A stretch of DNA of 64,000 nucleotides from Penicillus capitatus. Its lineage: Eukaryota; Plantae; Chlorophyta. The notes under the pieces were generated by a model, which had not been told where the DNA came from, did no database searches, and was given only the letters and a program-made list of their open reading frames with translations. The position numbers and the translations under genes were made by a program. This document shows positions 7,206-64,000 of the stretch, one piece after another. Position 1 is the first letter of the stretch. Each line of letters begins with the position of its first letter. The stretch spans positions 920,786-984,785 of the forward strand of contig OZ287702.1 of NCBI GenBank assembly GCA_965649825.1, given 5' to 3'.

Positions 7206-8147
7206 CTATTGTGTTTCGTCTATTCCCGAGTCCACATATTCGAACGCGCCCGATTGTTCGTGTTCTAACATGTCCAGAGCGACCAGACAGCTATCGGCGA
7301 CGATGGGGTCGGGATCTTTTGCATACTGCTTCAGTAACGCGACGCAATCGTCCATCGCAATCGATCCCAGCGCTTCTGCCGCCTCATGACGCACCATTGG
7401 ATTCTCGTCCACATCTTGAAGAACGCGTTGCAAACCGGGCGCGGCTGTTTTGTCCTGCATCTGTCCGAGAACAAACGCCACTTCGTGCTTCAGGAGAGCA
7501 CTGGAGGAGTGGAAAGCCTGCACAATGGCATCGACAGCAGCCGGGCCTCCGATATTCCTCAAGGCAAACAGAGATCTGTACCGATCAAACATCGTGGCCT
7601 CTTCGTCAAGCAGACAGGTCTTGAGCTGTGCCAACGAGGCAGTCATGGCTGCTGCTGGAGTGGGGTCAACTGAAACGTAATCGCTTCTGGATGTTTGCAC
7701 ATGGCCTCTGGCTGCTTCGTCGATGCGCTGGAGGGCAAGCAAACATGTTTCTCGGACTTCAGGTGCGTCATCGTTTTTATGCGCCTCCAACGGAGCGAGG
7801 CATTCCAAAGTACCGATGGCTCCCAGCGCTTCTCCAGCTTCATGTCGAACCATGGGGTGCTCCTCTGGGTCGCTCAGAATCTTTACCAGCTCCGGAATAC
7901 CTGCCGGATTTTGCGTTTGGCCTAAACAGCGAACAGGATCCGCTCCAAACGAGGGTAGAGCAAATAACAAACCGAGACAGTAAGCCACTTCGTGACGGAA
8001 CAACGTCGAAGAGTCTTTGAGTCCAACAAGCAGGGCATCGTGCGCTTCTGCTGAATCCTTCAGGTTCTTGAGCGCAAAGAGAACACGATACTTCCGCGAA
8101 AGCGGCGTGTTTGGATCTTCGAGTTTGGCTCGGAGCTTTCCTATCAT
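7206..8147 (-). CDS. DOHH: Deoxyhypusine hydroxylase
   Basis: Four HE motifs in HEAT-like repeats: RHEVAYCLG, RHEAGEALG, KHEVAFVLG, RHEAAEALG. One in-frame intron. Confidence 0.95.
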   Translation of the reverse strand: MIGKLRAKLEDPNTPLSRKYRVLFALKNLKDSAEAHDALLVGLKDSSTLFRHEVAYCLGLLFALPSFGADPVRCLGQTQNPAGIPELVKILSDPEEHPMVRHEAGEALGAIGTLECLAPLEAHKNDDAPEVRETCLLALQRIDEAARGHVQTSRSDYVSVDPTPAAAMTASLAQLKTCLLDEEATMFDRYRSLFALRNIGGPAAVDAIVQAFHSSSALLKHEVAFVLGQMQDKTAAPGLQRVLQDVDENPMVRHEAAEALGSIAMDDCVALLKQYAKDPDPIVADSCLVALDMLEHEQSGAFEYVDSGIDETQ

Positions 8148-8192
8148 CACACCGTACGAAACATCACGCGTCTATCCGCATCCTTCTGCACC

Positions 8193-9671: not shown

Positions 9672-11272
9672 CTACGGTTTCATGGTGTCCAAATCTCTCT
9701 CCATTGCTTCCATGTCTTTCAGTGTGGCTTGTGCATGTTTTAAGCTCTCCTATCCCAAACCCTTCATTTCCATGAAACTGCTATTCTTTGACAGACCTTT
9801 GCTGTTGTGTACTCCTGTGCGAGTGAAAGATATTCCGGCCCGAGTCTCTTGCAATGATCCAACTGGTCTGTTAACTGAAACAGCATCTCGCATTCCATTC
9901 TCCGAAACAACTTGTCCTCACTTCTTGCTGTTCCCTTATGGCAGACTCCGTTTCTTGATTGAGTATCTCCCTCAACGCTGCAAGTCCTTTGACTGCTCCA
10001 GGCGCATAGCAAGCATTCATGATGTTGTATAGCAAGCACTCAGTGTGTCTGCCAGGAAAACCATGTTATAACTTGTGTCCAAAGGGGTCCTTACGCTGCA
10101 TGCAGTCGGATCATCGTCTCTTGATAGATCAGTCTTTCCTGGTACAAAGAATGCCAAATTCTAGAGATGCACTCACCGTTCCGAAGAGGACCTTTTCTGA
10201 TTGAACTTGTTGACCCAAGACATGGCTTTCCAAGAGATTGGACATCATCGCCCAGATAGATTGGACTTCTTGATGCACTTCGCAGATAACAGCGGTCGCC
10301 AAGTCGATTTCGTTGCGATCGGGCATCTCCGCAGCGCCTTCTATTTTTTCATCAATGGCTGCAAGAATTGCGTTCTCGCGATCTGCAATGGAAACTTCAT
10401 TTGACAGTGACCCTTCTGCAGGTATTGAACTGAACTTGGCATCTCGTTTGGATCCACTTGAAAGAGAAGACAGAGACGATGGACCGTATCAGAAATATGT
10501 GCTTCAAACTGCGGAATCAGTTTCTGGTTTGTCATCTGTTAGACCATTTTATGCAGACTTTGATGCGGTATCTCTTCGCAAGATGGGCTCACGATAGAAT
10601 CGGCGATGTTCATTGAACGATGGGTTAGCTCCTTTGCAGTTACGCCCAGAATGAAGCCGGCATGTCCCACAAGCGCTGCCGCATGCTCATCTGCATAGAA
10701 ATGCTCAAAAACGACACAGCGATTGTGATATTCACCATTCTGAGGCATCTCCTCATCACCCCTTTTCTCCATTCTAAGTGTCTGCATCGCTTTAGCAACC
10801 TCATCCAAAACCAAACCATCAGCATAACTCCTCACGACTTGGTGCAGAATCGACTGCGAGAGAATGATGCAGGGAGTCATGCAGAGCAGTTAATGGAGAG
10901 TCCTTCTCTTCCGGTTCATTTCGCGCATGTGTATTGAACTCCTCCAGCTGTTGCAGCAAAAAGAGCTTTACGAGATATCTACACCACCGTGTCCCTCGTC
11001 CCTGCCTCAGCAGCAGCGACCATCACCTCCGTCGAATGGCTTTCATCTCTTCCTTCGCCTTTTCACATTCCTGCATCACTTCCGTCGGGAGTCCAACATC
11101 TGATCATCATCGTTCAGTGGCTCTTCGCAATGAAGAGGCCTGGATGGTTACCCGGGTCTGGGATCGCTTCGGCAAGTCGATCCCATAGTTGACGGAAACG
11201 GGGACATCTTTGAAGAAGGGCTGCTGATGGACGTCGCGGCGATAGACGTCGTCCTTCTGTCGTGCTGTTCAT
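9672..11272 (-). CDS. Multi-exon coiled-coil protein, probable augmin subunit 4 (HAUS4/AUG4)-like
   Basis: C-terminal exons CYAPGAVKGLAALREILNQETESA, LDHCKRLGPEYLSLAQEY and LKHAQATLKDMEAMERDL resemble the plant AUG4 C-terminus from memory. Internal exon structure is only partly resolved. Confidence 0.5.
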
Positions 11273-11484
11273 CGTGTTAATGTTCCAATCGACGATTATC
11301 GTTTCGAGTAGACTGGGACCGACAGCCGTGCAACTGTGTGCGTTTCTTTAAGTTCGTTGCTGCACCCGTGTAGGCAAATCTGTGCCGAAGAGCTTCGCTT
11401 TTCGTTCAATTACGTAAGAGACCTGCTTCGCGGGTTGCTTAATACCTACTATGCAATTATTTAGCACCGTCTGGATAGTTCCTA

Positions 11485-12113: not shown

Positions 12114-13230
12114 CAGACTGGAGCCCTGCGTTGCCCAATATGTTTGATCATTACCAGATAGAAGAGGAATAGACGTTGAGGGTGAGCGGCATCGCATAGA
12201 AGTTCTGTGTTTATCCACTGCCGTTGCCGCCGCCACGTCCATGTTCTTGTTGTAACTCCCATTCGTCAGTGTGGAAACCAGGGCAGTCTTGATAAGTCCG
12301 ATCCAAAGAGTATAGATCGATCGTTGGCTGGTTGCGTAGCTACCTGTCATGAAGGACAGACAGCTGTGTAATGGCGTCAGCTGTGGTGTCTTTTCAGCTA
12401 TGCGGCACTACAGATAGCAGCAGTACGTATCTGCCGCTCGTTCAGGATATACGATGGGTTTCATCACCACACCGTCGAACGGTGCCTTGCCAGGGATGAA
12501 CGATGTGCATCGAAGGCTTTGCGCAAGGATGTATGAATGGTATTCATTACGGTGCTTCGACCTGACGGTTTGTTGTTGTTTCGTTCCTGTGGATAGACGC
12601 GTTTTGTAGTTTCGAAGGATCTGGCGAAGCAGAGACGACGTTTTGTGCTTCAAAGCCTTTTCTGCCAAGTCCGAAGATAAAAATCAGGTATGGCGTCGCT
12701 CTGCCGATAACGACAACGAAAGATGTTTCCCTCGCAAACCGACATCGCATCTTAGGCACTGCCGTCTTTCTTCGTTCAGTGGTCGCGTTTCTCGATAGAA
12801 CGCCGTTTATTTCCTCGCGCCGTTTCTACACCAGCCGCTTCGGTTAACTGCTTAGATGATGACAAGCTGCAGCTCGACGTGTACGTGCTGCAACAGTACT
12901 CGCGTCGTGTCGAGTAGCGTCATACCAGAATTCGCGTACACACGAGGGTACTGCCGAGAAAGAAAGAGGAATCGACGATGGCTCAGCGAAGACGGATGTC
13001 CGTTCCGAATGATGCCGAACGAGATGTTCCGTGTCGGCGTTCTCATTTTATGGCCGAGCGACAGGAGATGTTATTCGGCACAATCGACTGTTTTCCGCCA
13101 AAAACGCGTTCTGCTTTTTCGACGGGCTGTTACACACCCACGCCGTCTTTCTTGCACTTTAAAGGACTCCTGTCATCAGAGTTGCGGATGCTGAACATGC
13201 ATGATTTTGATTTTAGGTGACGTCGGAAAC

Positions 13231-15819
13231 ATGGACTCCTCCTCATTTCTTGATGTTCCTCGCGAGACTGGCTCGCGATCTGGAGAATGGAATGCTAGCG
13301 ACTACCATTGGGATCCCTACCAGTTCAAAGCTACAAGGATCATCCGACGTTCTTCCAAGCCCAAACGACGCGGCCGGTCTCGCATGCGTGGTCCCGTGTT
13401 GTGTCAAGTTGACGGATGCCAAAGCGATCTCTCTGGTCAAAAAGAGTACCATCAACGCTACAAGATCTGCCCACAACACATGAAAGCGAAATGCATCCCA
13501 AAAGACGGCGCTCCCCACAGATTCTGTCAGCAATGCGGACGATTTCATTTGCTCAGCGAATTCGACGGAAACAAGCGATCCTGTCGTGTTCGACTCACAA
13601 AGCATAATCAGAGACGACGAAAGAAGTCTGGAGGAACGTTGACGGGATTCGATTCTGCTCGAAGCTCGACACTGTCCAACTCCAATTCCCCGACAGAAAC
13701 CAACGTGGCTGTGGAGCTCGAACCTTCTACAGAGAATGAAGCAGATCCAACTGCCATAGCGTCCTCTTTTTTTGTCTCCCATGAACAGCCCTCTCTCTTC
13801 TATCCAAGCAAGGCCACACTCGCATTCCGAACATCTGCTTGACTCCGAGTGTGCCTGCTCTTCATTGTGTGTAGGCTACTCACAAGCAGCGTACAGAAAA
13901 GAGACCTCGTTTCTAAATGACGCTTTGTATTCCTCATGCACCGACATGAGTACGCATCTTGATGACCAGAGGATTCAGTGGTCTCATGGAGAATGCTGTG
14001 GTGATGTAGAGCCTAAGTTTGATCCGTCCCAAATGATGCCTCGTCATCTCGCCGATGCCTATACTGGTTTGGTCGGCTTAGATGAAACTGCTATTGATCC
14101 TTTGCAAGCAAACCCGAGCGTGTTTTCCACTAACCCTGGTGTGGCATCCGAAAGCAGACGACAGGCTGGATACAGTCAAGACGCCCCCGTGATGATGCCT
14201 GTTTTAAATAAAACTGTTTCGGACAATACATTGATGGATCCCGTGGCATTTATACCCCCAAGGACGATTCCGAAAAGTTTGCCCTACGGGACCCCTGACC
14301 AGTTTAGCAATTCTTCCTCTTGCATTCTTCCGTGGAACGCATGTCCAAATCAGACGGAACTTGGACCGATGCTCACCTACCCTCATGCAGACGCTGGGAA
14401 AATGGACAGTGTGTTCAGAAACGATCTCTGGGAAGAAGAGATGCGTGCCACGAATTACAAGAGTCTGTTGAAATTGACTTCATTCTCGATCAAGGTCTTC
14501 GACTGTATACCTGGGAATCTACCTCTTAACCTCCGGCACGAGCTGCTACGAGCAGTACGATGATGATGATGCACCCATACATGTCTCTATGTATCATTCG
14601 CCTTTTTAGGTCCAAGAAGGATTAGTTCCCGAAGGATATATGCGACCTGGATGTGTGAATTTGACGGTGGACGTGTTTCAGCCTGGCTGGAAAAAATCTT
14701 CGACTATTGACGATATCGTTGACGCATTACTCTCTTCTGATTGCGATTTTTGGAGGAGGAAGAAGATAATGGTAGGCATTCCTTCCCTCGCTTTGCACAC
14801 ATCATCTCAATCTCACGCACATTCCACAGGTTCAGACACACTGCGAGTCAATACGGATTGAACCGGGAAAACAGCAGAGAAGATACAGTTTGGAAGCGAA
14901 TGCGGAATTGTACCCCAATGTCCAATCCGTTCGGCCGGTCTGTGTGTTAGCTTCGGCCTCCAATCGCCGTTTTACAATCAGAGGAGACAACATTAGCTCT
15001 ATTCAAAGCACTTCAATTCATTGCAGGATTCAAGGCAAACACTCTATCTTCTCCTATACACGTCACATCCGCCTGTGCTTGTCGCCGTGCAGGGAAGTTT
15101 GTTAAGGTGGATGTCAACGGGCCTCAAGATGTGGAGTCAGGATCCTGGTCTTTTTCACTTTATGAGAAACTTCCATGTGGCACTTTACGAATCGAGATGT
15201 CAACGAATGGAATGATCGACCAGACACTGGTAATGTCACCGCCCCTTTCCTTTGTCTCTGTATCAGAATGTTGTCGTCTTCAGCCGATCCTGTGCGTCGA
15301 TGATAGCTCTGTCGTTGCTGAAATTGAAGAGTTTTATGGCCAATATGGTGCGGCTGCGCATTTGTCGGTGTGCAGAGAGAAACATAGACTGTTTGTTTAG
15401 GTCGTCAATCGAGCGCATTTCTCGTGGAGTTTGGCCTAGCTGTAGAGGTCCGATCGTGGCTGCTTGCTGTATGTCAGCGTTATGGCGTCGCTGCTGCTGA
15501 CCTAAGAACGTTTACTCAGCGATCTTGGCGTTCTTTTGGGGGCAGATTGGGCTTCAAGCAGGCTAGTTTGGCAGAATTTCTGTTCTGTGTGCATTCTGCC
15601 GGCCACCTCTACAACTATTGCAACGAACGAGGAATGGCGCAGACGGCGCAGTACCTGCAGCCAGTCGTGGCTTTGAATGTTTGCGACGGGTTTGACAGAA
15701 TGCCGACTTTCATACAGAGGGACGCTGGCGTACAGCAAAAACGTCACAGAAAACGATACCTCAGATTCATGAAGCGTCTGTTCAAGCAACATGTTGACAA
15801 GAGCGTACTGTGCTGCTGA
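13231..15819 (+). CDS. Long-type SBP-box (SPL/CRR1-like) transcription factor
   Basis: [10 protein letters not shown] motif; SBP domain CQVDGC...YHQRYKIC...[35 protein letters not shown]; later [15 protein letters not shown] and MRPGCVNLT motifs of long SPLs. 3' end approximate. Confidence 0.88.
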
Positions 15820-41990: not shown

Positions 41991-44900
41991 ATGGCAACGA
42001 CAACAGATTTTTTGGCCTTTGGCTGTAAGCGCAGCGACCATCTCGATATCACAAAACCCATTTCGAAATACGTTGGCAAAATCTATGGCAAGGAACAGGC
42101 AGCAGACATTCTACAAGACATCGAAGAGGTGACGCGAAGGAGAAGGGAAGTTGTCGCCGCCAGCGGCGGAGGAGCGAGTGAAGGTGCTAAAGAAATTTGT
42201 GCCAGGTATGACGCAGTCCACTACCTGGACTCCCTGCTTATGCATCATCATGGTGTGTAGCTACTACCGAGCCCTGTCTGTTATGGAAACTCGTTTTCCC
42301 ATTAGTCGGGATTCGAATCATGCACAGGTGGTTTTCTGTTGGACGAATGCCATGAATCCCAGGAAGCGATGCAAACAACTGAACATCCATTTCGAAAAAG
42401 CGTCTGTTCTGTTTAACATTGCGGCACACCTTTCTCAATCGGCAGCCCAACAGAACAGAGAGTCGTCATCGGCATACAAAGAAGCCATGAAGAACTTTCA
42501 GGTGACCTGTGAGAATGTGTGAGAAAGAGTGATTTATGAAAGTACAGGAAGCAGCCACTGTATTTGCCCAAGTACGGGATGTGGCACTGAAGGTCGAAAA
42601 TCCAAAGCCCTCAGATCTGACAGCAGATTTCTTGATGATGGCCGAGAAGCTCATGTTGGCCCAAGGACATGAATGTGTCTACTGGATTGCATCTAAAGAT
42701 CAGAAGAGCCCCCTGATTCTTGCCCGTGTAGCGAAGCAGGCCTCGGGCATCTACGCTGAGGCATTGGGATTCCTCGCCAATCCATTTGTCCGTGAAGATC
42801 TCGACAAGTTATGGCAGGTGCGTGACGGATTGATACATAAAGGCCATCGCGAGGCACTCGGTCTCAGGATTTGGTCCAGAGCAAGAGTTGGCTGTTCGAA
42901 GCACTTTGTCAGTATCATGCTGCGGAGGATGCTCGATCGAAGGAAGATATCTCGACAGAGATTTCGCGACTGAATCAGACAACCATGTTGCTGCAGAAGT
43001 TGCTAAAGAATGGAAAATTTATGACCCAGTCTCTGCCGATATTGTTGAAGGAACTTACAGCCACCGTCACCAAGCGACTGCAGAAAGCTGAAGGAGTATG
43101 TATGTTACCCATGTCTGTGCTTAAACGACAGTTCTGTGTTCAGGACAATGCATCTGTCTACTTAAAGAGAGTGCATCCTTTCAATGAGCTGCCCCTGATC
43201 ACAGGTGTCTCCCTTGTGAAGCCCAGTCCATGTGCGTACCTGGATGCGTCATCCGAGCACATCTTTTCGGACCTCATTCCCGAGCCCATGTACCTCCTCT
43301 CCTGGCCACGTGTTTGTAACTGGATGCAATGTGGACAGCACCAAAGCCCTGTCAAGGTATTCGGATCTGGTGGATGAGATCATTCGCAAACAGATGGCGA
43401 AGCTTGATGGAGCCACAGACGAAGCACGACTGCGTTTGAAGCAGTATGAGCTGCCAGAGCGATTGGATTCTGTCACGAGTACCAATCCAGCTATGATACC
43501 GGAGGGATTGAAAAAAGACTTGGAAGAGATCGAGCAGTGTGGAGGAATAGGATACCTGGTCGAGGTAGACACCCCCAAGATTCGATCGCGAACTGCGGTC
43601 TGATGCGGTGTGTACGTTCAGATGGTCGCACAGGTGACTGGACTGAAGAATTCTGCCGTGGCCGATCTGGATAAGGTGGAGCAGGATCTCGACGACGAAG
43701 CAACGAAAGACTCGGAATGCAGAGAGCAATACGGTCAACAATGGACGGCCAAGACATCGGCTGGACAGACAGTGGGTTTCCGCAAAATCGTCTCATCCTA
43801 TCGGTAAGGGACAGGGATTCTTCGAGTCCATCACTCCTGAAACTTCACGCCACTGTAGGGAGAACATCACCAATGCCGACAACAGTGATCGGGTGATCCA
43901 AGAGAAGCTGACACAGAATACGGAGAAGCTCGGATTACTCTCGCTTACCTCTTGCGCAGAACATTTGCCAAAATTGGAAGCTGGCATGGTCAACACGACA
44001 GATCTGGAGCCACAGACGATCCTTGCAAATCTCAAAAGTGCGATGCTGCACATGAGTGGCGGAGATGATGTGTTTTGTAGATGCCGTCGATCAGTTGGGT
44101 GCCATGTCGGAAGAGAGGGCGGGACTGGAAGAATCTCTAAAAGAAATGAAGAACAAAGACAATCTGTTGCCAAAACTCGTGGCAACCGGCGTGGGTTCTC
44201 ACGAAGAATTGTTCAAAATGGAGCTGCTGAAGTATGATGAACTGATCAAGGACGTCGATGAGAATCTGAAGAACCAGGCAGAGTTGCTTGAGTATGTCCG
44301 CAAAGCACTCGGCACCTTTGAACAAACATTCGACATTACGGCATGGAAACAGAAAACGGATCAGTACTGCAAGGAGATCAAAGCAAACGTAAGCATAAGA
44401 CGACAGCGATTGTGTGACCTCCTTTCCAATGCATCTCCATCTGCAGATCGCCGCCTTTCATGACATCCGAACCAATCTCGGAGAAGGAATGCGTTTCTAT
44501 ATGGACCTCAAGGCACATGTTGACAAACTCAAGCAGCAGACAACGGACTTCATTCTGTCTCGAACGCTGGATAGAGAAGACCGTTTGGAGGTGAACACAA
44601 AATGCTCGGCAAAGATGAAGGACATATACATCTCTGCTGGTTTTGTAGATGCTGAAGGCCAAAGAAAAGCCTGCGGTCATGGTTGCACCTCCTCAGCCTC
44701 CTGCAGAACCACCAGCGTTTGTGCCTCCGCCTTCTGTCCCTTCTGAACCATCAACCTATGCGACATCGCCACCACAGCCAACCCAAGTGTCCACTGCTTC
44801 CTATACAACACCGTCTTATGCTGGAGTACCCATGGAGACAAGACAGGACAGTGGAACACAGAAGCCGATGGCTCCAGCAGCGCCGCCACCGCCGCCTGAT

Positions 44901-45518
44901 CCTCCTGGAAGTACCTATGTGCCTCAAGCGCCTCCTACTGCTCCGCCTGTGCAACATGATGCCATGGTGGAGAGTCCTAACCCCTATTACCCACCGCCGC
45001 CTCAATCGCATCATCCTCCTTCTCCGCCCCCACCTTCCGCGCAGCATTCATCCTTCTATAATCCGTATGTCCCTCAAGGGCATTATCCGCCTTCGCAAGC
45101 TGCCTATTCTCCCAATACCACCCATTCCATACCTCCAAATCCGGGATACAGTAATCAAGGGCAGACAGCACAGACACCAATGTCGTATGCTCATCCAGGA
45201 AGTGGCCAGCCAGCACCCCAGTATGCTCATCCAGGAAGTGGCCAGCCAGCACCCCAGTATGCTCATCCAGGAAGTGGCCAGCCAGCACCCCAGTATCATC
45301 AGCCCAATTATCAGCAAAACTATCAACACAGCTACCAGCCAAACCAGCCGGCTTCGTACCCCTATCCACCACAAGACCAACCGATGCAGCATCCCTATCC
45401 GCCACAAGATCAGCAGATGCAGCATCCCTATCCCCAACAACAAGGACAGCAGCCGCCACCTCCATCAGGCTACTCTCAATATCCTCCTGGACCACACTAT
45501 CCGTATCAGCATCATTGA
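41991..45518 (+). CDS. ALIX: ALIX/Bro1 ESCRT-accessory protein (Bro1 + V domain + Pro-rich tail)
   Basis: FEKASVLFNIAA, MLAQGHEC, EISRL, V-domain exons (EARLRLKQYELPE, EGMRFYMDL) and a PYP/PQ-rich C-terminus. Confidence 0.93.
45186..45293 (+). repeat. Coding tandem repeat, 3 x 36 bp (YAHPGSGQPAPQ) in the ALIX Pro-rich tail
   Basis: Three identical copies of tatgctcatccaggaagtggccagccagcaccccag starting at 45186, 45222 and 45258. Confidence 0.97.
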
Positions 45519-50186: not shown

Positions 50187-50451
50187 CGTTGCGTGCCCGC
50201 CCTTTTGTCGCAATCGAAAATGTCGCTTTCTCTAAAATGCACACACGAATTCCCTCACTGCGTCCATTCCCTTGTCGAGACACGCACCACCGAGGGTGGA
50301 AAGAGCACAAACCTCGCTCCTTGCTAAAAGCGACGGTGGCTCAAAATGCGAAATGCAAAGTCTGCGAAGCGCAAGGTCATTAAATGCGCACCTTGCTGCG
50401 TCAGTCAAGTTGTTGCGTCAATTTGCGTTGTTGCTGGTTGGTCTTTCAAAA

Positions 50452-51231
50452 ATGAACACTGAAACCGAAACTGAAGATTCTGAAGTGACCGGCTCCGGCG
50501 AAGAGGAAGAGGAAGAGGATGCCTCGTGGATTTCTTGGTACTCCGGTCTTCGCGGAAACGAGTTCTTCTGCGACGTCGACGAAGAATATATCCAAGACGA
50601 GTTTAACCTCAGTGGACTCTCTAGTCAAGTACCTTACTACGACTACGCCCTTGATTTGATACTCGATTCCGAAAGTCCCAGCAGCGAACAGTTTACTGAA
50701 GAACAGCATGAACTCATCGAGGCTGCCGCTGAATTGCTCTATGGACTCATCCATGCTCGATATATACTGACGGCCCGGGGACTCAGTCAGATGTTAGAAA
50801 AATACAAGAACTGTGACTTTGGCAAATGCCCTCGAGTGCATTGCAATGGACAGCCGTGTCTCCCAGTGGGAATGTCGGATATTCTGCGTCAGTCGACTGT
50901 CAAGATTTTCTGTCCGAGATGTCAAGATGTCTACTGTCCTCGGTCAAAGTACCAGGAGAATATCGATGGTGCCTATTTTGGGACCACATTTCCACATTTG
51001 CTTCTCATGACTTATCCGTTGCTTCGACCACCCAGGCCAACAGTGGAGTACACCCCTCGGGTGTTTGGATTCAAGTTACACCCTACTGCTTTTGACCAGA
51101 AACCTTCTCCCACCCAGAACGGAAACAGCCGTTCCACGATGTCACTCTCTGTGAAATCTGCGACGACCACGACAGCAACACCGGCGGCTCCAGCCAAATC
51201 CAAGCCCGCAAATGTGGAAGAGAGGAAGTAG
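50452..51231 (+). CDS. CKB: Casein kinase II regulatory (beta) subunit, intronless
   Basis: [46 protein letters not shown]...CPRC and [12 protein letters not shown]. Confidence 0.97.
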
Positions 51232-52846: not shown

Positions 52847-52920
52847 GACACGAACACCACGTATCAGCACCACTTTGGCAGACCCTAAGACGATCGATAA
52901 AATGACGCATTGTGCATTCG

Positions 52921-53547
52921 ATGATTTCCTTCCACGACGTTCTGCTTCGTCAAACAGATGTGGATCTGTTAAAGGGGCCATATTGGCTCAATGATCAACT
53001 CGTGGCCTTCTACTTTGAATACCTCACACATGAAGTCGTGCCGAATGCATCTCTTCGGTTTCTCCCGGGCGCCGCCGCCTTTCTGCTGAGGAATGGGACT
53101 GTGGAAGACGTGGACGTCTGCTTCGTCCGACCGTTAAAGCTCAAGCAGTGTGATGTCATTTTTATGGCGGTGAATGATAATCCAAATGTGACCCAGGCCG
53201 AAGGCGGAACGCACTGGAGTTTGCTCATCTGGGTGCGACAGGAATGTATGTTTGTGCACCTGGATTCGTATGGCGGCGTAAACAACGAGCCGGCAAGAGA
53301 TACGGCAAAGAAGCTGCATGTCGTGTTGTCCACGGAGGGATCCATGAAGTTTGTTGCTCCCCTCGTCCCGCAACAGACAAACGGCTCCGACTGTGCCCTC
53401 TATCTACTCAAATTCGCACAGATCCTCGCCACAGATCTCACTCAGTGGAGTGCGTCCCGATTGAAGATTCTGAAATGTGTGACCCCCTTGAGCATCATAC
53501 ATTTTCGCAAAGAGCTACTCGACATCATCGAAAGCAAACGAAGCTAA
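52921..53547 (+). CDS. SENP8: NEDD8-specific protease (SENP8/DEN1, peptidase C48)
   Basis: WLNDQLVAFYFEYL, GGTHWSLL, HLDS and QQTNGSDCALY catalytic motifs. Intronless. Confidence 0.93.
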   Translation: MISFHDVLLRQTDVDLLKGPYWLNDQLVAFYFEYLTHEVVPNASLRFLPGAAAFLLRNGTVEDVDVCFVRPLKLKQCDVIFMAVNDNPNVTQAEGGTHWSLLIWVRQECMFVHLDSYGGVNNEPARDTAKKLHVVLSTEGSMKFVAPLVPQQTNGSDCALYLLKFAQILATDLTQWSASRLKILKCVTPLSIIHFRKELLDIIESKRS

Positions 53548-54536: not shown

Positions 54537-54610
54537 TCACTCTCTGGCAGGAGACCAAAACTCCTGAGATCGCTCACTCTCTGGCAGGAGACCAAAACTC
54601 CTGAGATCGC
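54537..54610. repeat. Perfect 2 x 37 bp direct repeat, each unit with a CAGGAG-N7-CTCCTG hairpin
   Basis: tcactctctggcaggagaccaaaactcctgagatcgc at 54537 and 54574. Confidence 0.95.
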
Positions 54611-54996
54611 TCGCTGACAGACTAGGGAAAACACAGCAGTGGCAACTGGCTGTTCACCAGTAGAGAATGCCTTTCTCTTTTTGCTAAGAAAATCAAAAGA
54701 GGTAAAAGAATCTGAAAGCCAGGAAAGAGTTCAAACAGTCACTCGTGTGCAGACTTCGAATCAAGGTCCTTCAGACATCTTTGTTGGAGGCATGAGTCAT
54801 CGCTCCTGTGGCATGAGATTAGCAACAGAGATTGAGAGAGAAGAGAGCGGGTTACTTGATGAGACATGGTCGACGAACTGCAACGGAGGATTGTGCCATT
54901 GGCATGCATGATAGGATCTATCCGCTCGGGCAGTGTGGGAGAGTTTTGAGGGTGCGAGTGGGCCGACCATCTCCAGGGGCTTTCAGATCCGGCGCG

Positions 54997-55348
54997 CTGC
55001 GCGGACATGCAGTTAAGTGTCCAAAAAGGGACCAAAAATAAAAAACAGACACAAAATGAAAACTCACAGGAGCAAAAATGAAGGCCGCGGACAGACACAG
55101 AAAGAAATAAAAGGTCTTCATACAAACTCAAAAATTAAAACAGACAAGTGTACAGACAAAGCAGGAATGCTGTAAAGTAAGGAAGAAACACAGAAAGCAA
55201 TACAGCAAACAAGGAGATGGTCACACGTCAGAAAGGAAACAGAGGTTCCGTTGGCCAAGAAGAGGAAAACTGGCATCCAGGGAGAGAGAGCGAAACGAAA
55301 AAGGAAATAGAAAGACGGCCTGGGTGCCGCCGATCTGAAAGCCATCAC
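54997..55348 (-). other. Structured spliceosomal-intron-like element, copy A (352 nt)
   Basis: CCG|GTGATG donor at 55348, ACTTAAC branch-like motif, CGCAG| acceptor at 54997, T-rich interior. Ends are homologous to copy B. Confidence 0.55.
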
Positions 55349-55746
55349 CGGAGGGAGATCAAGCCACGCTCTGAATTAGCGACACTCCCTCGCGGATGTT
55401 TAGGCTGATCCTTTTCTGGTTCTTGCATGCCATGCATCCCCCTAAGAAAATCTACTCAGCCAAATGCAAACAGAGATCAGTAAATTGGATTACCTCTATA
55501 GTCAATGTTGTAAAGGGGAACATTGTCTGTAACTCTCACCTTGGAAAGTACTGTTAAACCCCATCTGTAAAGACAGAGTTAGATGTGACATTTAGTGACA
55601 TGAGAACACACCTTTGGCTAGCGGCGCCGCTCGATGCAACCTGGCAGAGGTACCAGTGACCTCTCCCGAAAAGCAGCCCTGGGAAGGGTGAGAATTCCCA
55701 GTGTGATTGGCGAATATCCCTGGAATCGTCCTATGGACCCGGCGCG

Positions 55747-56188
55747 CTGCGAGGACATGCAAACAAGAGGTCCAAAAAGGGACCCAGCACACACAGCGAA
55801 TCAAGAAAGCAAGGAAAGCAAGGAAACGTAAACAGAAAACAGAAAACAGAAAACAGAAAGAACAGGACAGGATGAACATCGCAATGGCACTTAAAGAACA
55901 CAGTTCAAGAGAAAACAACAAAGAAAGAAAAGATAAAAAGACATGCAATAGGGGACAACGGAATCGGCGACAGGCACAAGAAAGGTAAACACAATCACAG
56001 AGCAGAAAAACAGACAAGGAAAGCAATGACAACTGCCAGGCACACAAAAAGACAATACACAGGCACACAGGAAGAAATACAAAGGCCGATTCCGTTGCCC
56101 AGATCGAAGAAGACGGGCATCCAAGGGAGAAAGAGAGAGAAAAGGGACAGAAGAGACGGCCCTGGATGCCGATCCAAAGGACGCTTAC
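55747..56188 (-). other. Structured spliceosomal-intron-like element, copy B (442 nt)
   Basis: CAG|GTAAGC donor at 56188, pyrimidine-rich CGCAG| acceptor at 55747. Removal joins ORF 56453-56189 in frame to an open exon ending at TAA 55592. Confidence 0.6.
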
Positions 56189-58073
56189 CTGTGGGCATCG
56201 ACCGAATCACGTGGCTGCCCAATGTCATGGTCTCTGCTCTCCCTGTCGCCCAACCATCCTCCCTGATGCGGCTGCCGCTGCCTGGGGTGGGGTGGATCAG
56301 TGCAAGGTAAGTGATCCAAGACTGCTCGTGGGCTTCTCGAACGTCGGCACTGACTGCCTCACCAGAAGCCATTCTGCTTTCCGCCTCCCGCAGCTGGTGG
56401 CTCTTCTCTCTGCAGGTGTCCAGTTGCCGCCTTTGCCGTGTTGTTCTCTTCAAACTCTGTCAGCTGGTCCGTTCACGATTCTGTCAGTGAGATGAAGAGG
56501 AAGTGAGTGCCTCTTCTGGAAGACATCTACCAGGAGTCTATCTCTCCTTCTGACACGTCTTCTTCATCTCATCCTGATGACACTGCATCCTTGAGCACAA
56601 GAGCAGATGTGACATTCTCTACCTGATGAGACATGTCAGTGCAGTGCTCGTGTTGTCGAGTGGCGCCTCTCCAAGTCATGGTCGAGGAAGACCACCAATT
56701 CGTCCTCTTCTGCCCTGTGGAAGGGCGGTTGTCACTCTTTTGATCCTCCTGGAGTCTTGTTCTGTCATCGGAGGATGCAGCGGCAGCTTCTGTCGAGTCT
56801 TCGGAAAGAGGAGCCGCATTCGGGCTAACTCGGACATCCAGCTTGTCAGCATTCCCGGGCACACGTCTCTGACAGATCCAATAGCAGTGCTCCGAAGGAA
56901 TCTGATGCAGCACAGCCACTCATGCTTCTCCGCAACTGTGATAGCCAATATCCACGCTTCGTCTGCAACAGGTGGTCTTTGACTGGGCAAACTGGCTGAA
57001 GGAATTACCTCAAATGTTCGTCTGAACCACGTCTTCCTTTGCCAGATTGGATGCATCTCATTTCTTGTCGAGTTCTTCGTTTTTCGGAGGGAAAAATTGC
57101 CTCTTCTCGAAGAAGCAAGCACTAAAGGTGTGGCAGTGATTGTTTGAGATCTTGATTGATCTCATCGAGTGTCCATGCCCCATGCGTCCTCCTCTTCAAC
57201 TCCACATTGATTCTGTGAGATGCAGGCTCATCTGGTGCATAGGAGACAGAGAGAGAGACATACCTGGAATGAACAAAAGGAATCTTCGTCGAGACCAGGG
57301 GCTGATCTTTTGGTTTCGTGCAGCTTTCAGGCCACTGCCAGAGTGACCAATTCGAAAAACAGTTAGCTGACTTGGCCATCAACAAGGCTCCTTTATTCTG
57401 ATGATCTTACAGCTCGGGTGGCCTGTGCATTTCTTCGAAACTCTAGAGTTCAGAGTTCCAATGCCTCGAAAATCTGATCCAGGGCATCTTATCAACTCTT
57501 GGCAAAGAATGCACTCCAGCTTTCTTCCTGGCGTATCCAGTCTCCTGGGATGCGATCAACGGCCTTTGGTTGTACCATCATCGTTGTCCGAGTGCATGAA
57601 TCCAGGCGAGACAAGATACATCTCTCTTCAATCCAGGGTGGCTTTGGCAGTCGTTGTCTGTGATCTGAGTCTTCTTCTTTACTCCAGTCCAGACGCCAGA
57701 GAACACTCAATGCCATAGCACCGCGAGATCCAGGATTTCACTGTCATCCAGCAATCATGTCTTCCGTCGTCATGATTGATGAATCTGTTGCCGAATCCAT
57801 CACTTCTCACGAGACGATAGATCAAAGCCTCGTAGAAAAGGCTCGATCCAAACTGTCTTCTCTTGACCAAATCGCCTCTGTCATTGCATCCAGGCCACTG
57901 CTGCCACTTCCTTCGACACTGTCTCTTCAAATGCCTGTCAAATCAAGTGTACAGGAAGGAGCATGAGGCATCTGCAGATTACCTTGAGGAATGTGTTGGC
58001 GAGTGCAGGATGCGATAAGCTGACGTACGCATCAAAGGGCTCCTTGGTCAGACGAATTCAATCTTCCGAAACT

Positions 58074-58155
58074 GATTCAACCGAGCTCATGTAGACTTTC
58101 CAGCTGATTCGACCCAGCTCATGTAGACTTCGCAGTAGATTCAACTGAGCTCACG
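58074..58155. repeat. Imperfect 32-bp tandem repeat, about 2.5 copies
   Basis: gattcaaccgagctcatgtagactttccagct / gattcgacccagctcatgtagacttcgcagta / gattcaactgagctcacg. Confidence 0.85.
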
Positions 58156-58902
58156 CATGATGGAAACTGTGGTCTTCTTGCATGCTCTTCTCGACATGTT
58201 ATCTTTTTTCGGACAATGAACTTTTCTACAGAACAGAGCACCACTCAGCACGAAATGTAAAGTGAAAGGACCTTTTGGGAACCTTAGATTCCCTGGTGTA
58301 CTGGGAACATCATGTAAGATGTCCACAAGCTTTGCAGAATGGATTATGAAGACGGATCTGTCGTCGCGAAAACCAAATTGTGTCCTTCGATAGAGATGTC
58401 TTCAGTCTTGTCGCATTTCTGGAATGGTTATTGCTCTCAGTATCTCCGGCTCTGTCTCATGAATTCTCTTTATGATGTCGGATGGCGACGTTCGATTGCT
58501 GATGATATCTTTCTGGAAATCTTTCCTTCAGGATGCCTGAACATGATGATCCAATCCCTTCATGTCTGATAACAAATCTAAGCATCCAATGATCATAAGG
58601 GGGACACTGTACCTTGATGTTCCACATGACAGCTGTCTGGCCGATTATCATCATATCCATCTGGTTCTGCAAACTTCTTCGTTTTCAGCATGCCTTGTAG
58701 AGCTAATTCAGTTTCATGTTGGTATTCCAGGAAACCAAATCGTTGTTGCACCCACCACCCTGCAGAGAAGGCACCTCATTAGTTTCTGATCCACATAGAG
58801 ATTCAGCATGTCATCTACCATGCCATACAACTGAATACTGTGATGCTCTCTGGCCATTGTTGGAGAACCATATCCATCACTCTTCCCAAGTCCCCTCCCA
58901 GA

Positions 58903-59193
58903 GAACCGGACACCTCGACATCCACCTCCAGCGAACCGGACACCTCGACATCCACCTCCAGCGAACCGGACACCTCGACATCCACCTCCAGCGAACCGGA
59001 CACCTCGACATCCACCTCCAGCGAACCGGACACCTCGACATCCACCTCCAGCGAACCGGACACCTCGACATCCACCTCCAGCGAACCGGACACCTCGACA
59101 TCCACCTCCAGCGAACCGGACACCTCGACATCCACCTCCAGCGAACCGGACACCTCGACATCCACCTCCAGCGAACCGGACACCTCGACATCC
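58903..59193. repeat. Perfect 30-bp minisatellite, 9 full copies plus one partial
   Basis: gaaccggacacctcgacatccacctccagc starting at 58903 and every 30 nt to 59173. No spacers. Confidence 0.98.
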
Positions 59194-59725
59194 TCTACAC
59201 AAAAGACCAGTCCACCCCAGGCATAAACAGATCATCTATCTGCTTATCCCAGACAACAGAAAGAATATAGTCCAGCACGCCATCCACCACCTCCACCTCG
59301 AAGTCCAGTGCTCCAGAACTAAGATCCAGTCCATCCGACAGGCCGCCTTCTCTCCAGAACTGAACACATGAAAACCATCCACCGCAGAAAACAGAAATGG
59401 CTACACAAATGTACCCCAGCGCCGGACAGTAAAGCCATGTACCACTGTTTAATGAACCACAGCAGCTCAAAAACATGTCGGGCCACATTTATCACTAATA
59501 TGAACAGAATCAAAGGCGATCTCCCAGCCATGAGTGCCACTAGCACAAAAAAAAACAGCCGTGCAGCAGCTAAGAAACAAAAGGAAAACAGAACGTCTGT
59601 GTCTAAGTCTGGCCCCTCAAACGATCCAGATCCCAGTAAAGTGCACACATGAGGAATAGCCAATGCAGTCCCGTGCACGATACCAAAAATGACTGTCGAG
59701 GGACGCTCTGAGAGGTAAAAAACAG

Positions 59726-59847
59726 AAAACAGCTGGCAGCGAGCGGAGCTCTAACTCCACAGAAAAAACTGAGAATTTTTTTTTCTTTTTTCTTTTTCCA
59801 GTCCCCCAAAAGAAAACAGCTGGCAGCAAGCGGAGCTCTAACTCCAC
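59726..59847. repeat. 35-bp core duplicated at an 87-bp period, each with a GGAG-N6-CTCC stem followed by A-run/T-run
   Basis: aaaacagctggcagc(g/a)agcggagctctaactccac at 59726 and 59813, one mismatch. Confidence 0.92.
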
Positions 59848-59910
59848 CGAAAAAAGCAAAAAAAAATTTTTTCCTTTTTAACTTTTGCCATCCCCACGAA
59901 TAAAAAAAAC

Positions 59911-61688
59911 TCAACAGAAAGAGGGCTCATCCGGCCAGACTGGGTAAGGCGATGGCGACGAGTACATGTATGGCCGCTGAGGAAAAAGCGGCTGCGCCTG
60001 TTGCGCGGATGCCGTCGCCGCCGGTAGGAGCTCATCCGGCCAGACTGGGTAAGGCGATGGCGACGAGTACATGTATGGCCGCTGAGGAAAAAGCGGCTGC
60101 GCCTGTTGCGCGTATACCTGACCCGCCGGCAAGAGCTCATCCGGCCAGACTGGGTAGGGCGAAGGCGAGGAGTACATGTGTGGCCGCGAAGGAAAAAGCG
60201 GCTGCGCCTGTTGCGCGTATACCTGCCCCGCCGGCAAGAGCTCATCCGGCCAGACTGGGTAGGGCGAAGGCGAGGAGTACATGTGTGGCCGCGAAGGAAA
60301 AAGCGGCTGCGCCTGTTGCGCGTATACCGGCGCCGCCGGCAAGAGCTCATCCGGCCAAACAGGGTAGGGCGACGGCGAGGAGTACATGCATTGCCGCGGA
60401 GGAAAAAGCGGCTGCGCCTGTTGCGCGTATACCGGCGCCGCCGGCAAGAGCTCATCCGGCCAAACAGGGTAGGGCGACGGCGAGGAGTACATGCATTGCC
60501 GCGGAGGAAAAAGCGGCTGCGCCTGGTGCGCGTATACCGGCGCCGTCGGCAAGAGCTCGTCTGGCCAGACAGGGTAGGGCGACGGCGAGGAGTACATGCA
60601 TTGCCGCGGAGGAAAAAGCGGCTGCGCCTGGTGCGCGGATGCCGGCGGCGGAGGACATTGGTGCGGCGGAGCCTGTTGCTCGGATTGCTGCGGTGCTGGT
60701 CTTGGATCCTGCGGCGCAGATGGCGGTGGATGATTGCCCTGCCAGCCAGAACAAGCGTAAGGAGTCGAGTCATGTGTGTGGATGTGGACTTACCTCCGGG
60801 ATGCCTTGGCCGGAAGCGAGGCGCCGTTGTCGTTCCGTGGCGGAAACTCGACGGGGGCGCCTCGTCATTGTCGTGTCCTGTCCGGTTTGGCCACCGGGTG
60901 GTCCAAACCGGACAGGGGGCTCATTGTTAGGCGCCATCTGCGCCGTCGACTGGGCTTTGAGCGCCCAGAATAACTCCTGCCTTGCGGCATCATCCAGCCC
61001 CTCGAACCCCCTAGGGGGGTACTTCCCCCTAACCTCCCGCAGGGTTATCTCTGAGAACCTACAGAGCACAGAAAAGGTTAGTCTCCGTCATGCAGAGCGA
61101 CGTGTCTGTAGGCCGCGTCAGCACGCATGACGGAGAAACGCGCGAAGAGCCGCATGCTGCGCGGCCGGATGGCCACTAGCTCTTCTCCGGCTTTCGGCGT
61201 CCCGACAGTCGGAAAAGCTCTCGCGGAAGGGGATAGCGCGAGAAAGCCAGAGCATGGCTCAGAAGCCGTAACGCATGGCGGCGACGGAGGAGGAGGACGG
61301 AGAACACTTACTCTTTGCCGGGGAACGTATATTTGGGGTCGTTGGCACATGGCGTCGTGGTCTCGCAGTCCATCTTCGGCAGAGAACGCGCGCGCAAAAA
61401 ACAGACAAAAGGTCAGTTACAGCCTGGGGAAGTCCTTTTGACGCCTTGGTTACAGCCTAACGGTCAGAGGACACGGACATGAGAGGTCTCTGGTCTCCGG
61501 GGGTGGATGTTGGGGGCCGACTCGTCGCAGAAGTCGATCACAGGAGCGTCGTGGCACGGATTCCTTTCAGTCGACGTCGTTCTCCGTGGAGCTGGACGCT
61601 CGCAGAAGCCCCGAAGTGTCGTTTGCCATCGATCTGCAGGCATCCTTCGTTGTGCTCGGACACTCGGAGTGGCCGGTGATGCATGCAC
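59911..61688 (-). CDS. Intact orphan spliced gene encoding a Pro/Tyr/Gln-rich protein with 7 x 35-aa repeats (384 aa from ATG 61373; about 454 aa with an upstream exon)
   Basis: Exons 61373-61312, 61058-60794 and 60738-59911 join in frame (GTAAGT donors, ACTAAC branch point, introns of 253 and 55 nt). Optional exon 61688-61479 is also in phase. Repeat-core substitutions are all synonymous in this frame. Confidence 0.75.
59925..60655 (-). repeat. Coding tandem repeat, 7 x 105 bp in three subfamilies (2+2+3)
   Basis: gctc(a/g)tc(c/t)ggcca anchors at 59925, 60030, 60135, 60240, 60345, 60450 and 60555. Confidence 0.97.
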
Positions 61689-62650
61689 GACCCCTCAGAG
61701 AAAGAAAGAGCGCAGTCGGTCAACGGCGTTCGCTCGTCCAGCAGCATTGCGCAGGGTGACGGGCACAGAGAGTGACGGGCGAGCTGCGGGCAGGCAGGTG
61801 CAACTCTGACAAATGCGGATGGCAGCAGATCCAGTCTTCTGGCCGAGCGCAGTCCGCTAGCGCGTAAAAAGAGAGAGAGCTCAGGGAATCGCTGTTTTGA
61901 GTGAGATTACGAAAGATCTGAGTCTTTCGTGTTTCCAGGTTAGCGACACAGTTGTGTTCTGGAGCAGTTGTCTTGCTCGTGTTCTGCTCTGAATCAGTCC
62001 AGGTAGGACACATCGTAGAGTGATATGTGCACGCGAGTGTTCGATGCCACATTCATCGTCTCGTGCTTTCTGAGGTGGAGCTCTGGAGTGGTGGCTGTAT
62101 GGCAGAGGACATGCTAGTATCGTTGCAGCGACCGAGACAGCTGAATCTTCACCTTTATGGGGTGTTTTGTTCTGGCCGACCTCAAATGTTCTGAACAAGT
62201 TTTAAGATGCAGAGGAAGGAGCTCTGATAGAAATGATAGCAGCGTCGGCGTGCACGCGTGAGATCGTTGTACCTGTTGATACGCGTTGAGGGAATCGGTG
62301 TTACATCGTAGCAATTTCTATTGGACGCCCAGAAAAATCAGAGAGCAGAGTGGAGCGAGTGTTGGAGGACAACATGATGATGTGTTACACGTGTGAGTGT
62401 TTACAGTACATGTGCGTGCAGGACGCCATTCTGTAGTCTCGATACTTTTCCAGTTGGAAAAAACAGACAGCTCTCAGCAATGAAACCAACAGCAATGTTT
62501 ACATGAAGAAGGATCGTCTCGATGTGCCAGTCTCCTCAAAGTGAGCAACGCAAGCATTGCGGTGCATCTCAGGAGACCAACCAGGCTGCTATACAGCTCC
62601 AGACGGCCATTCGGCAGTGAGTTGTGTCGCCGTCTTGGGCGAAACAGACA

Positions 62651-64000
62651 CTACGTTGACGGGATCGCTGTATTCCCTGCTGGATGTGGTGTACCTGAGG
62701 CAATGCAATTCCTCTCCATGGGGATGAGGACATCGCCATCCCTAAGCAGGCAAGACAGTTTCACGAGCCACAGGTACCTGTGCGTTTGTGGATGCACCGA
62801 AGAAAAGGGGAAGCTGCACCAAGAACAGTCGTCGAACAGTTCCCATCGTAACCCAAAGACGGCCAACCAGTTCTGCCAGGGCCGCCTGGAGAAGCTCATG
62901 CACTGAGAAACTGAGAGATGGGACGACGGAATGGTTTGTGCTGGTCTTGAAGACGAGAATCCACCCTGCTGAATGAGCAAGTGCGTCGGTTCGCACCTTC
63001 AGCAGACGTCGTTGAAGGCGGGGAACGCGTACAGATTCAGTATACGCAACCGTGAATTCCAGAGACCGTTGGCAAATTCGCCCCCGATCCTGCACGACAA
63101 GGGCCAAGATGCACATGGGTTACACTGTAAAGCGCGCGCCACGAGTCGTCGACTCGGCGCTAAGGCAGCGCTCCAAGGCTCGGTGGACCGGAGATTGGCT
63201 TCACAGGCGCCGGAGGCAACGGCCTTTGACATGGAGTCAAGTCGAGAGCACACGGAATGCCTCCCTGCGGCACGGACAGGAGACAGGTCAAGCCCAATCC
63301 AGATGTGGTTTCTGTCCAGCAAGACTGTCCAGTCTCGAACCTTGAATCGGACTCGGTATCCAGACGTCTAAGCATTGATGAAACTGTCCCCGAGGAAAGT
63401 CTGATCTCTATGACACCGAGATCGACCAGTTTGTTCTCTAAGATCCGGCACCCTCTGCATGGCTGGTGTGACGACTGGAAATCTCGGATGCTCAAATGGC
63501 CAACAGAATTCTCAGCAGCCTTACTTGGGCACTGGCTGAGAGAATGTGGATGGCCGTCGCCAGACAGAGGGCAGCTGACAGTTTGCATGCCAGAAGTGGC
63601 TGTGTGTCCAACGTGTCTGATTATTGGCATGTCACTAGAAGAGTTCGCGCGGATGGCCTGTCTGACAATTGTCTCACAGAGGTTGGCCGGTGCAGCTTCA
63701 GTTCGATTCGATAACGAGGAATCCGGCGAAGATGATTTCCTCCGACGTCAGGCGTCAGGATGGTACCTAGATCAATCCTTGGCTGACAGATCTGAGCAAA
63801 GTGGATTTCGAGAAACTCCTTTCGACGGCGTTCGATATATCCCCATCCAAGAGGCCTTTCAGGAATTGCTAGTTTCATCACCTGGTCGTTGTCGATGTGT
63901 GATTCCATGGGACTCTGAAGAATCTTTACTCGAGAATTGGCTGTTGCCAGGTGGTGCACTTTCCAAAGCAATAAGCATCTCGCCAAGTATTGTATTGTGT
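62651..64000 (-). mobile_element. Degenerate non-LTR retrotransposon relic (zinc-knuckle-like motif plus RTE-like APE endonuclease); 5' part beyond the window
   Basis: In order: CPLSGDGHPHSLSQCP (63573-63529), GHLSIRDF (cf. GTWNVRTL), KLVDLGVIEIR (cf. KLDILGLSEVR), SRRLVARAL, RILNLYAFP (cf. YAP), LLIQQGGFS (cf. GDFN). One frameshift, one TGA, catalytic residues mutated. Confidence 0.6.

Follow-up and report, generated by a model that had tools for sequence, protein, structure and literature searches.

Several described proteins present copies of a short docking motif along a disordered chain. The algal EPYC1/PYCO1-type pyrenoid linkers do so with a transit peptide, a basic repeat region and a Rubisco-binding motif of the W-[KR]-x-x-L type. 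The proline-rich tail of Sos, bound by the SH3 domains of Grb2 and Drk, uses PxxPxR, an established SH3 ligand that is usually of class II orientation; the Sos-S2 peptide GELSPPPIPPRL binds Drk N-SH3 with a Kd of ~41 uM (PMC10532153). Here we describe a gene of the green alga Penicillus capitatus that lies on the minus strand at positions 61373–59911 of a 64,000-nucleotide stretch of DNA (the window; assembly GCA_965649825.1, contig OZ287702.1, positions 920,786–984,785 of the forward strand). Its predicted product ends in seven tandem copies of a proline-rich unit of 35 amino acids (aa). From the sequence we consider it fairly probable that this gene, a member of an undescribed family at a conserved position, encodes a multivalent disordered ligand for a proline-recognition domain, with its motif amplified to seven copies.

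Tandem Repeats Finder (TRF) resolved the array at 59925–60647 as 6.9 copies of a 105-bp period with 94% matches and 0 indels. The minus-strand open reading frame (ORF) at 59911–60597 translates it as six full 35-aa units and a truncated seventh, in which MYSSPSPYPVWPDE is followed by PSFC and the stop codon. When the units were aligned column by column, the 42-nt, 14-codon core MYSSPSPYPVWPDE varied at columns 9, 15, 21, 27, 30, 36 and 39. All seven variable columns fall on codon position 3 and all seven are synonymous, with the same codon pairs that a preliminary description of this DNA had listed. The probability of seven variable sites falling on one codon position is 4.6e-4 (1.4e-3 allowing any frame), and that of the 4 transitions and 4 transversions in the core all being synonymous under neutrality is 8.8e-6. 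Since amplification, the core of each copy has undergone synonymous changes only.

The preliminary description also held that the rest of the unit changes amino acids. This applies to a linker of 5–6 residues (AAPVY, AGQVY or ATASA) and to three x positions, to which the replacements in the unit are confined, but not to codons 23–31 (A-Q/H-Q-A-Q-P-L-F-P; AQQAQPLFP). These are invariant at the nucleotide level except for a single H/Q change and, together with the next Arg, form the part kept by the whole family. Adjacent units are most similar to each other and similarity falls along the array, as expected for growth by local duplication. Long ORFs overlap on both strands of the locus, and the minus frame singled out among them earlier is supported, with a peptide that orthologs and paralogs conserve in that frame alone. 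The substitution pattern indicates that the minus frame is the coding frame and that the repeat peptide is under purifying selection. A protein look-up returned no exact record of the 228-aa repeat ORF.

Relatives were sought by an exhaustive phmmer search with the N-terminal 109 aa against 1.84 billion protein representatives. This returned 21 relatives (E 1.8e-16 to 2e-4), all without a name. A word-indexed search with the full protein gave a single match (P0001) and one with the family profile gave six proteins, again all unnamed. P0001, a prokaryote-style ORF, comes from a 1.68-Mb contig in ENA assembly ERZ26696514. Sources looked up for 18 of the 21 representatives and for five further members were unnamed ORFs from ENA assemblies throughout. 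The ten contigs recorded (25 kb to 2.2 Mb) are large eukaryotic contigs from ENA metagenome assemblies, and a scan of JGI metagenome contigs with the family profile found no relatives.

Seven other loci were compared with the window: L001 (the locus of P0001); L003, L004/L005 and L006 from the same sample; and L002 and L007 from ERZ25074695. L001 is collinear with window positions 54588–63126 (~8.5 kb) at 65–87% nucleotide identity and is therefore taken as the ortholog in a related species. It has the same exon 1 and the same intron positions, with an exon 2 that is 62% identical. L006 and L007 are also syntenic with the window locus. A distance tree resolved at least three subfamilies and placed the window gene, L001 and L007 in one orthologous group. 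The presence of several loci in one sample implies that one genome holds several paralogs; the window carries a single copy of the gene. The term orphan, used for it previously, fits only in the sense of unannotated, given at least 21 homolog clusters that include a syntenic ortholog and several paralogs per genome. These comparisons place the gene in a previously unannotated, lineage-restricted multigene family of a green alga. In L006, exon 2 switches frame after ...IDEPP within a run of C (~6130–6150), which reflects either a homopolymer error of long-read sequencing or a true frameshift, in which case this copy would be a pseudogene.

Three exons (61373–61312, 61058–60794 and 60738–59911) join in frame to a coding sequence (CDS) of 61373–59911 that specifies 384 aa. 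The features of the gene, including its 5' and 3' untranslated regions (UTRs), are as follows, with the evidence in brackets (AF2, AlphaFold2; dN/dS, ratio of nonsynonymous to synonymous substitution rates).

61479–61688, minus strand: 5' leader or promoter-proximal sequence, not CDS (comparison with L001 and L006, below)
61374–61478, minus strand: possible 5'-UTR intron, GTCCGT...AAG, non-coding (donor region conserved in L001 and L006)
61312–61373, minus strand: coding exon 1 with the start codon, MDCETTTPCANDPKYTFPGK plus 2 nt, phase 2 (in-frame model; equivalent short exon ...DYGYPGK/GTAAGT in L001–L005 and L007)
61059–61311, minus strand: intron 1, 253 nt, GTAAGT...TGTAG, with GCATGC-type motifs (position conserved in all loci)
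60794–61058, minus strand: coding exon 2, the conserved family module FSEITLREV...ELFWALKAQ...PPVRFGPP...RRPRRVS..ERQRRLA (phmmer, alignments, dN/dS, AF2)
60842–60862, minus strand: RRPRRVS, a conserved basic R-x-R-x-x-S segment (translation, family alignment)
60739–60793, minus strand: intron 2, 55 nt, GTAAGT...GGCAG (same position in L001, 10247–10300, and in paralogs)
59911–60738, minus strand: coding exon 3, with a P/Q-rich linker, seven motif units and PSFC-stop (translation, gene model)
59925–60647, minus strand: tandem array, seven times PLFP[PSQ]R[QP][CHY]MYSSPSPYPVWP, first copy at 60562–60621 (TRF, unit and motif tables, translation)
59724–59895, minus strand: 3'-UTR unit of 87 bp, twice, each with an A/T-rich run and a short hairpin, GGTGGAGTTAGAGCTCCGC (TRF; RNAfold -11 to -12 kcal/mol, z ~ -1.6)

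At junctions 61312/61058 and 60794/60738 the donor is GTAAGT and the acceptor YAG (TAG or CAG), and the frame is kept. Both coding introns are conserved in position and phase in the seven other loci, ortholog and paralogs alike, and the paralog ORFs read ...EV[RS] through the intron 2 donor. The splicing proposed earlier stands at these two sites. At the third, 61479/61373, a weak GTCCGT donor only joins a non-coding leader to the start codon, and the acceptor in L001 is displaced by 1 nt relative to the ATG; an intron at 61478–61374 is possible. The conserved signals indicate an intact gene of three coding exons that is spliced at both coding introns. Exon 1 is short and acidic, beginning MDCETTTPCANDPKY..., and has the same character in family members. 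GCATGC or CATGCGCATGCATG-type motifs occur at window 61121–61160, within intron 1, and in intron 1 of L001–L005, every family member inspected, and may be an intronic regulatory element.

An optional first exon upstream had been thought to extend the protein. In L001, GAC stands in place of its ATG at 61643, and the stretch differs from that of the window by three 1-nt indels that break the frame. In L006, which is 85% identical to L001, it is interrupted by a stop and a frame shift, and the coding sequence of every paralog begins at the counterpart of ATG 61373. No RNA genes were detected in the window by Rfam and tRNA scans.

The motif itself was defined across the family as P-x-[I/F]-P-x-R-x-x-hydrophobic-[F/Y]-[S/M]-x-P, and stands as a tandem array at the C-terminus of every member whose exon 3 is readable in frame. 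The search pattern imposed P1, [I/F]3, P4 and R6 and covered 39 copies in 8 proteins; hydrophobic 9, F/Y 10, S/M 11 and P 13 lie outside the pattern yet are conserved. In window exon 3, seven of the eight Arg/Lys residues fall within the motif. Units are 17 aa long in paralogs (PAIPPRPFLFMIPATPP five times in L004; PPIPPRQYVFMCPARPS four times in L003) and 35 aa in the window, and paralog units of identical peptide differ synonymously, as they do in the window. A single copy is found in L001 (PIFPPRQSIFSSPSPFPTWP) and in L006 (PLFPTRLAIFSSAAPFPAWP), against seven in the window. By tblastx, each window unit aligns to the single L001 copy (10550–10642) over 31 codons, and the dN/dS of the motif against the ortholog is ~0.2. 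With one copy in L001 and L006, and each window unit aligning to the L001 copy, the window array is taken to have arisen by seven-fold amplification, specific to this lineage, of a motif that was ancestrally single. Exon 3 contains 26% Pro and 12% Gln, and its repeat region has a pI of 5.0. AF2 run on the single sequence gave a mean confidence (pLDDT) of 43 and no secondary structure, and the exon 3 tail is predicted to be intrinsically disordered.

Coding arrays in this family appear to be dynamic on short time scales. L004 (~10400–10800) and L005 (~10400–10950), which represent the same paralog locus in one sample, carry a second coding repeat of 14 aa, APQPTEPAFPASSF, with ~3 and ~8 units, respectively. 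In the orthologs L001, L006 and L007, a Trp-acidic module (D[ED]MDWE.TPSPC...LMYC.TL) comes after the motif, and beyond one more intron there is a short exon 4 that ends ...SP[FL]FY-stop. The last unit in the window is joined directly to the last four codons of the ortholog exon 4, which indicates that the ancestral Trp-acidic module and intron 3 were deleted and a separate fourth exon was lost. A W-acidic motif of the kinesin-light-chain type, M[DE]W[ES], was considered; it occurs in orthologs and some paralogs and is absent from the window protein.

The core pattern PxxPx[RK] is matched by all seven window units (PLFP[PSQ]R) and by 39 units in 8 proteins from at least three subfamilies, and in sequence the motif matches the class II SH3-ligand pattern PxxPxR. 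It shares with the SH3-bound tail of Sos a P-x-hydrophobic-P-x-R core, a disordered Pro-rich setting and several copies per protein, and the hexapeptide PPIPPR of Sos-S2 is identical to that of the paralogs (PMC10532153). The family nevertheless has no homology to Sos or to known adaptors. Its motif is extended by x-x-hydrophobic-[F/Y]-[S/M]-x-P and arranged in a regular tandem array, and the likeness is one of pattern only. Ligands of WW domains of the 'PPR' type (PMC1557994) also invite comparison, with Pro preceding Arg in 25 of the 39 units. The other 14 have S, Q, A, T, K or D for the second Pro, which the PPR definition bars. Since the only invariant positions are P at -5, P at -2 and the Arg, PxxPxR fits better than PPR. 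SH3n/PRMn systems and the algal EPYC1-type linkers resemble the family in their disorder, their evenly spaced identical stickers, a copy number that varies between relatives and their lineage-specific distribution. They differ from it in the sticker used, and the family combines an acidic repeat region with a conserved N-terminal module outside the repeats and lacks an organelle targeting peptide. PY-NLS, PPxY, RVxF, D-box, LIR, CaaX and MyPhoNE motifs were compared by eye, and none fits the conserved positions.

The N-terminal module encoded by exon 2 has the family consensus F[SA]E[IV]TLREV.G..PPRAF..M..AEREQLYWALKAQ.TA...PPVRFGP...RRxRRxxS..ERRERLA (~90 aa). In the family alignment G52, R66, R69, R76 and L80 are invariant, and R67 and S72 are at least 90% conserved. 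Against L001 the module shows a dN/dS of 0.28 at a dS of 0.77. AF2 with the family alignment placed short helices at 6–10, 23–40 and 73–81 (pLDDT 69; predicted template-modelling score, pTM, 0.39). Besides its two or three short helices, the module contains an aromatic-Gly-Pro element and the basic RxRxxS segment. The small domain that splicing was said to add (...ELFWAL) lies in this module. Pfam gave nothing below E 0.1 for the full protein and 20 family members, a sequence profile search of the PDB returned 0 matches at E up to 10, and Foldseek of the exon 2 model against the PDB yielded no meaningful match (best E = 5). The RxRxxS segment at 60842–60862 is a candidate target of a basophilic kinase, or could belong to a nuclear localisation signal.

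Four other explanations each conflict with at least one tested feature. The array might be a functionally neutral coding minisatellite, a tolerated low-complexity tail on a gene that works through its N-terminal module. Copy numbers of 1 to 7 among close relatives, the 3 versus 8 copies of the neighbouring 14-aa repeat in L004 and L005, and a similarity that falls along the array as expected for unequal crossing-over would all suit such a tail. We nonetheless consider it unlikely, in view of core changes that are synonymous only, the low motif dN/dS against the ortholog, and the recurrence of the same motif in at least three paralog subfamilies despite units of 17 and 35 aa. A secreted or cell-wall hydroxyproline-rich glycoprotein (HRGP) would be in keeping with the green-algal host and with a Pro-rich exon 3 that contains Ser-Pro dipeptides. 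Such a protein is very unlikely here: no signal peptide is present, the short acidic exon 1 recurs in every member, the units have no Ser-Pro(3-5) or SPPPP blocks, and the conserved basic helical N-terminal module is atypical of HRGPs. An EPYC1/PYCO1-type phase-separating linker, which would glue a folded client such as Rubisco into a condensate, is suggested by a tandem-repeat, disordered, lineage-specific algal protein in which Trp is followed by acidic residues and Leu (VWPDELL) in each window unit. There is no transit peptide, however, and the N-terminus and the repeat region are acidic. The Trp segment has Pro-Asp-Glu directly after the Trp and lacks conservation in paralogs, unit spacing ranges from 17 to 35 aa, and the conserved N-terminal module is not a repeat; we give this explanation almost no weight. 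It is just as hard to credit that the locus encodes no functional protein, being a pseudogene or a non-coding transcript in which a GC-rich repeat incidentally gives rise to long ORFs. Several long overlapping ORFs on both strands, the lack of annotation and the lack of a self-match in the protein collection could be read in that way, but the peptide is conserved in one frame only, the splice sites are conserved, dN/dS is below 0.3 and the core substitutions are synonymous only.

The preliminary description itself had favoured a scaffold carried by a mobile element and engaging PCNA through a PIP box, SUMO through a SUMO-interacting motif (SIM), or readers of the RNA polymerase II C-terminal domain (CTD). 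Strings that appear to support it do occur: QTTLRGFC and VIDFCDES in ORF 61464–61688, and YSSPSPY in the array, which loosely resembles YSPTSPS. The leader ATG and frame are not conserved and the paralogs start at the equivalent of 61373, so the PIP-like and SIM-like strings are leader sequence. The former reads KLLQGLCG in L001 and ends in Cys instead of a second aromatic residue; the latter is SVNGLCGES in L001. Neither a full PIP-box consensus (Q-x-x-[LIVM]-x-x-[FY]-[FY]) inside the translated protein nor a SUMO-interacting motif (hydrophobic core with acidic flank) within the conserved coding region was found. The array does share with the CTD heptads tandem repetition and a Tyr-Ser-(Ser)-Pro-Ser-Pro string, but with one string per 35 aa it has no heptad periodicity. 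The core SP sites are absent from L006 (FSSAAPF) and from paralogs (FMIPATP, FCCPARP), where the conserved part is PxFPxR with the hydrophobic-aromatic pair. Carriage by a mobile element between two transposable element (TE) relics fares no better. The collinear site is occupied in L001, L006 and L007, so that the locus is syntenic in three other genomes; no dispersed repeats were detected within the window for the 10-kb neighbourhood of the gene, and no TE Pfam domains in the flank ORFs. This explanation is largely refuted and retains only a minimal probability. The broader notion of a multivalent scaffold is reasonable; its links to PCNA, SUMO and the CTD do not survive.

We are left with the reading of the protein as a multivalent, intrinsically disordered ligand. 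In each unit, a PxxPxR-type docking site in polyproline-II form would be presented to a proline-recognition domain. The most literal match for that domain would be a class II SH3 pocket, though it may instead be a WW domain of the 'PPR' kind or some other module. The hydrophobic-aromatic pair that follows PxxPxR could supply specificity, and the motif copy number, 1 to 7 across the family, could tune avidity. The N-terminal module would provide an effector or anchoring contact, possibly regulated by a basophilic kinase. Several points weigh against this proposal. PxxPxR is a pattern match only, of a sort that Pro-rich sequences readily produce. The green lineage has few SH3 domains. Among WW ligands, PP[RK] is a recognised class as well (PMC1557994). 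The exon 2 module is without a detectable homolog or fold, which makes any role assigned to it conjectural. The homologs are without exception unannotated ORFs, drawn from a small number of metagenome assemblies, and define the size and taxonomic range of the family only loosely. The window gene may also have shifted in function, having lost a module (MDWE...LMYC) that is retained in the orthologs.

A more far-reaching version would be a lineage-specific green-algal signalling or scaffolding system of proline motif and reader, in which rapid array expansion sets a valency of 1 to 7, the N-terminal module is a new small interaction domain, and family-specific 3'-UTR stem-loops provide coordinated post-transcriptional control. 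We regard this version as rather doubtful. Immediately downstream of the stop codon, the paralogs and the species-B ortholog have in common (A)n-TCTCACACTT-loop-AAGTGTGAGA-(A)n, with RNAfold energies of -8 to -15 kcal/mol. Precisely this arrangement was found nowhere else in ~130 kb of loci, nor in the window, which carries a different short hairpin (the 87-bp unit, twice) in its 3' UTR. L003, L004, L005 and L007 have 1 to 3 exact matches of the A-rich TCACACTT..AAGTGTGA hairpin at the corresponding place (L003 10776–10945; L004 ~11215–11390; L005 11474–11492; L007 ~6740–6940), with further copies seen by eye in L004, L005 and L007. Their recurrence suggests that the stem-loops are a post-transcriptional control element inherited with the family.

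Other elements were noted in the vicinity of the gene. A 30-bp tandem repeat at 58898–59193 (9.9 copies, 99–100% identity) reads (SGSLEVDVEV)n on the minus strand and adjoins a stretch (..LDFEVEVVDGVLD..) that L001 and L006 conserve at the level of translation. Rather than a TE relic, the repeat is probably one that expanded very recently inside an adjacent acidic gene. An element of ~210 nt at window 56086–56296 (minus strand), L001 14462–14725 and L007 11487–11702 shows 87–92% identity among the three species, within surrounding DNA of 65–73%. It has no clean codon periodicity and no Rfam match. The RNAalifold structure is one long, imperfect hairpin, formed by pairing of a purine-rich with a pyrimidine-rich arm and carrying a donor-like AG/GTAAG site in its middle. 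The element may be a conserved structured RNA or take part in regulated splicing. Farther away, a perfect 36-bp repeat (3.1 copies, 45185–45296) lies within ORF 44649–45518, which has no Pfam match.

The following genes were assigned in the window, which also encodes CSN3, an F-box/LRR protein and a PIN-domain protein.

7206–8150, minus strand: deoxyhypusine hydroxylase (DOHH)
13201–13842, plus strand: SBP-domain transcription factor
50272–51231, plus strand: CK2-beta
52912–53547, plus strand: Ulp1-type SUMO protease

SBP domains are not known outside the green lineage. The DOHH ORF matches those of trebouxiophyte and chlorophycean algae (the closest named) at 56–58%, those of animals at ~45% and an ENA relative at 89%. 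The SBP-domain gene and the DOHH similarities together identify the host as a green alga that has no close annotated relative. An apicomplexan affinity, raised by TGCATGCA-like motifs, was ruled out by the SBP-domain and DOHH results.

Proline-rich multivalent ligands are a well-known kind of protein, and the impact of this finding is otherwise modest. What it adds is a new protein family from a poorly sampled clade of green algae, one without homologs in Pfam or the PDB or among named proteins. An unannotated, lineage-restricted gene was here validated from sequence alone, through synonymous substitution within the array, orthology and paralogy. The locus is also a clean natural example of valency evolution, in which a docking motif that is single in the ortholog has become seven-fold here, with every copy kept by selection. 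If its partner domain is found, the family would offer a tractable system in which to relate motif copy number to avidity or condensate formation in algae.

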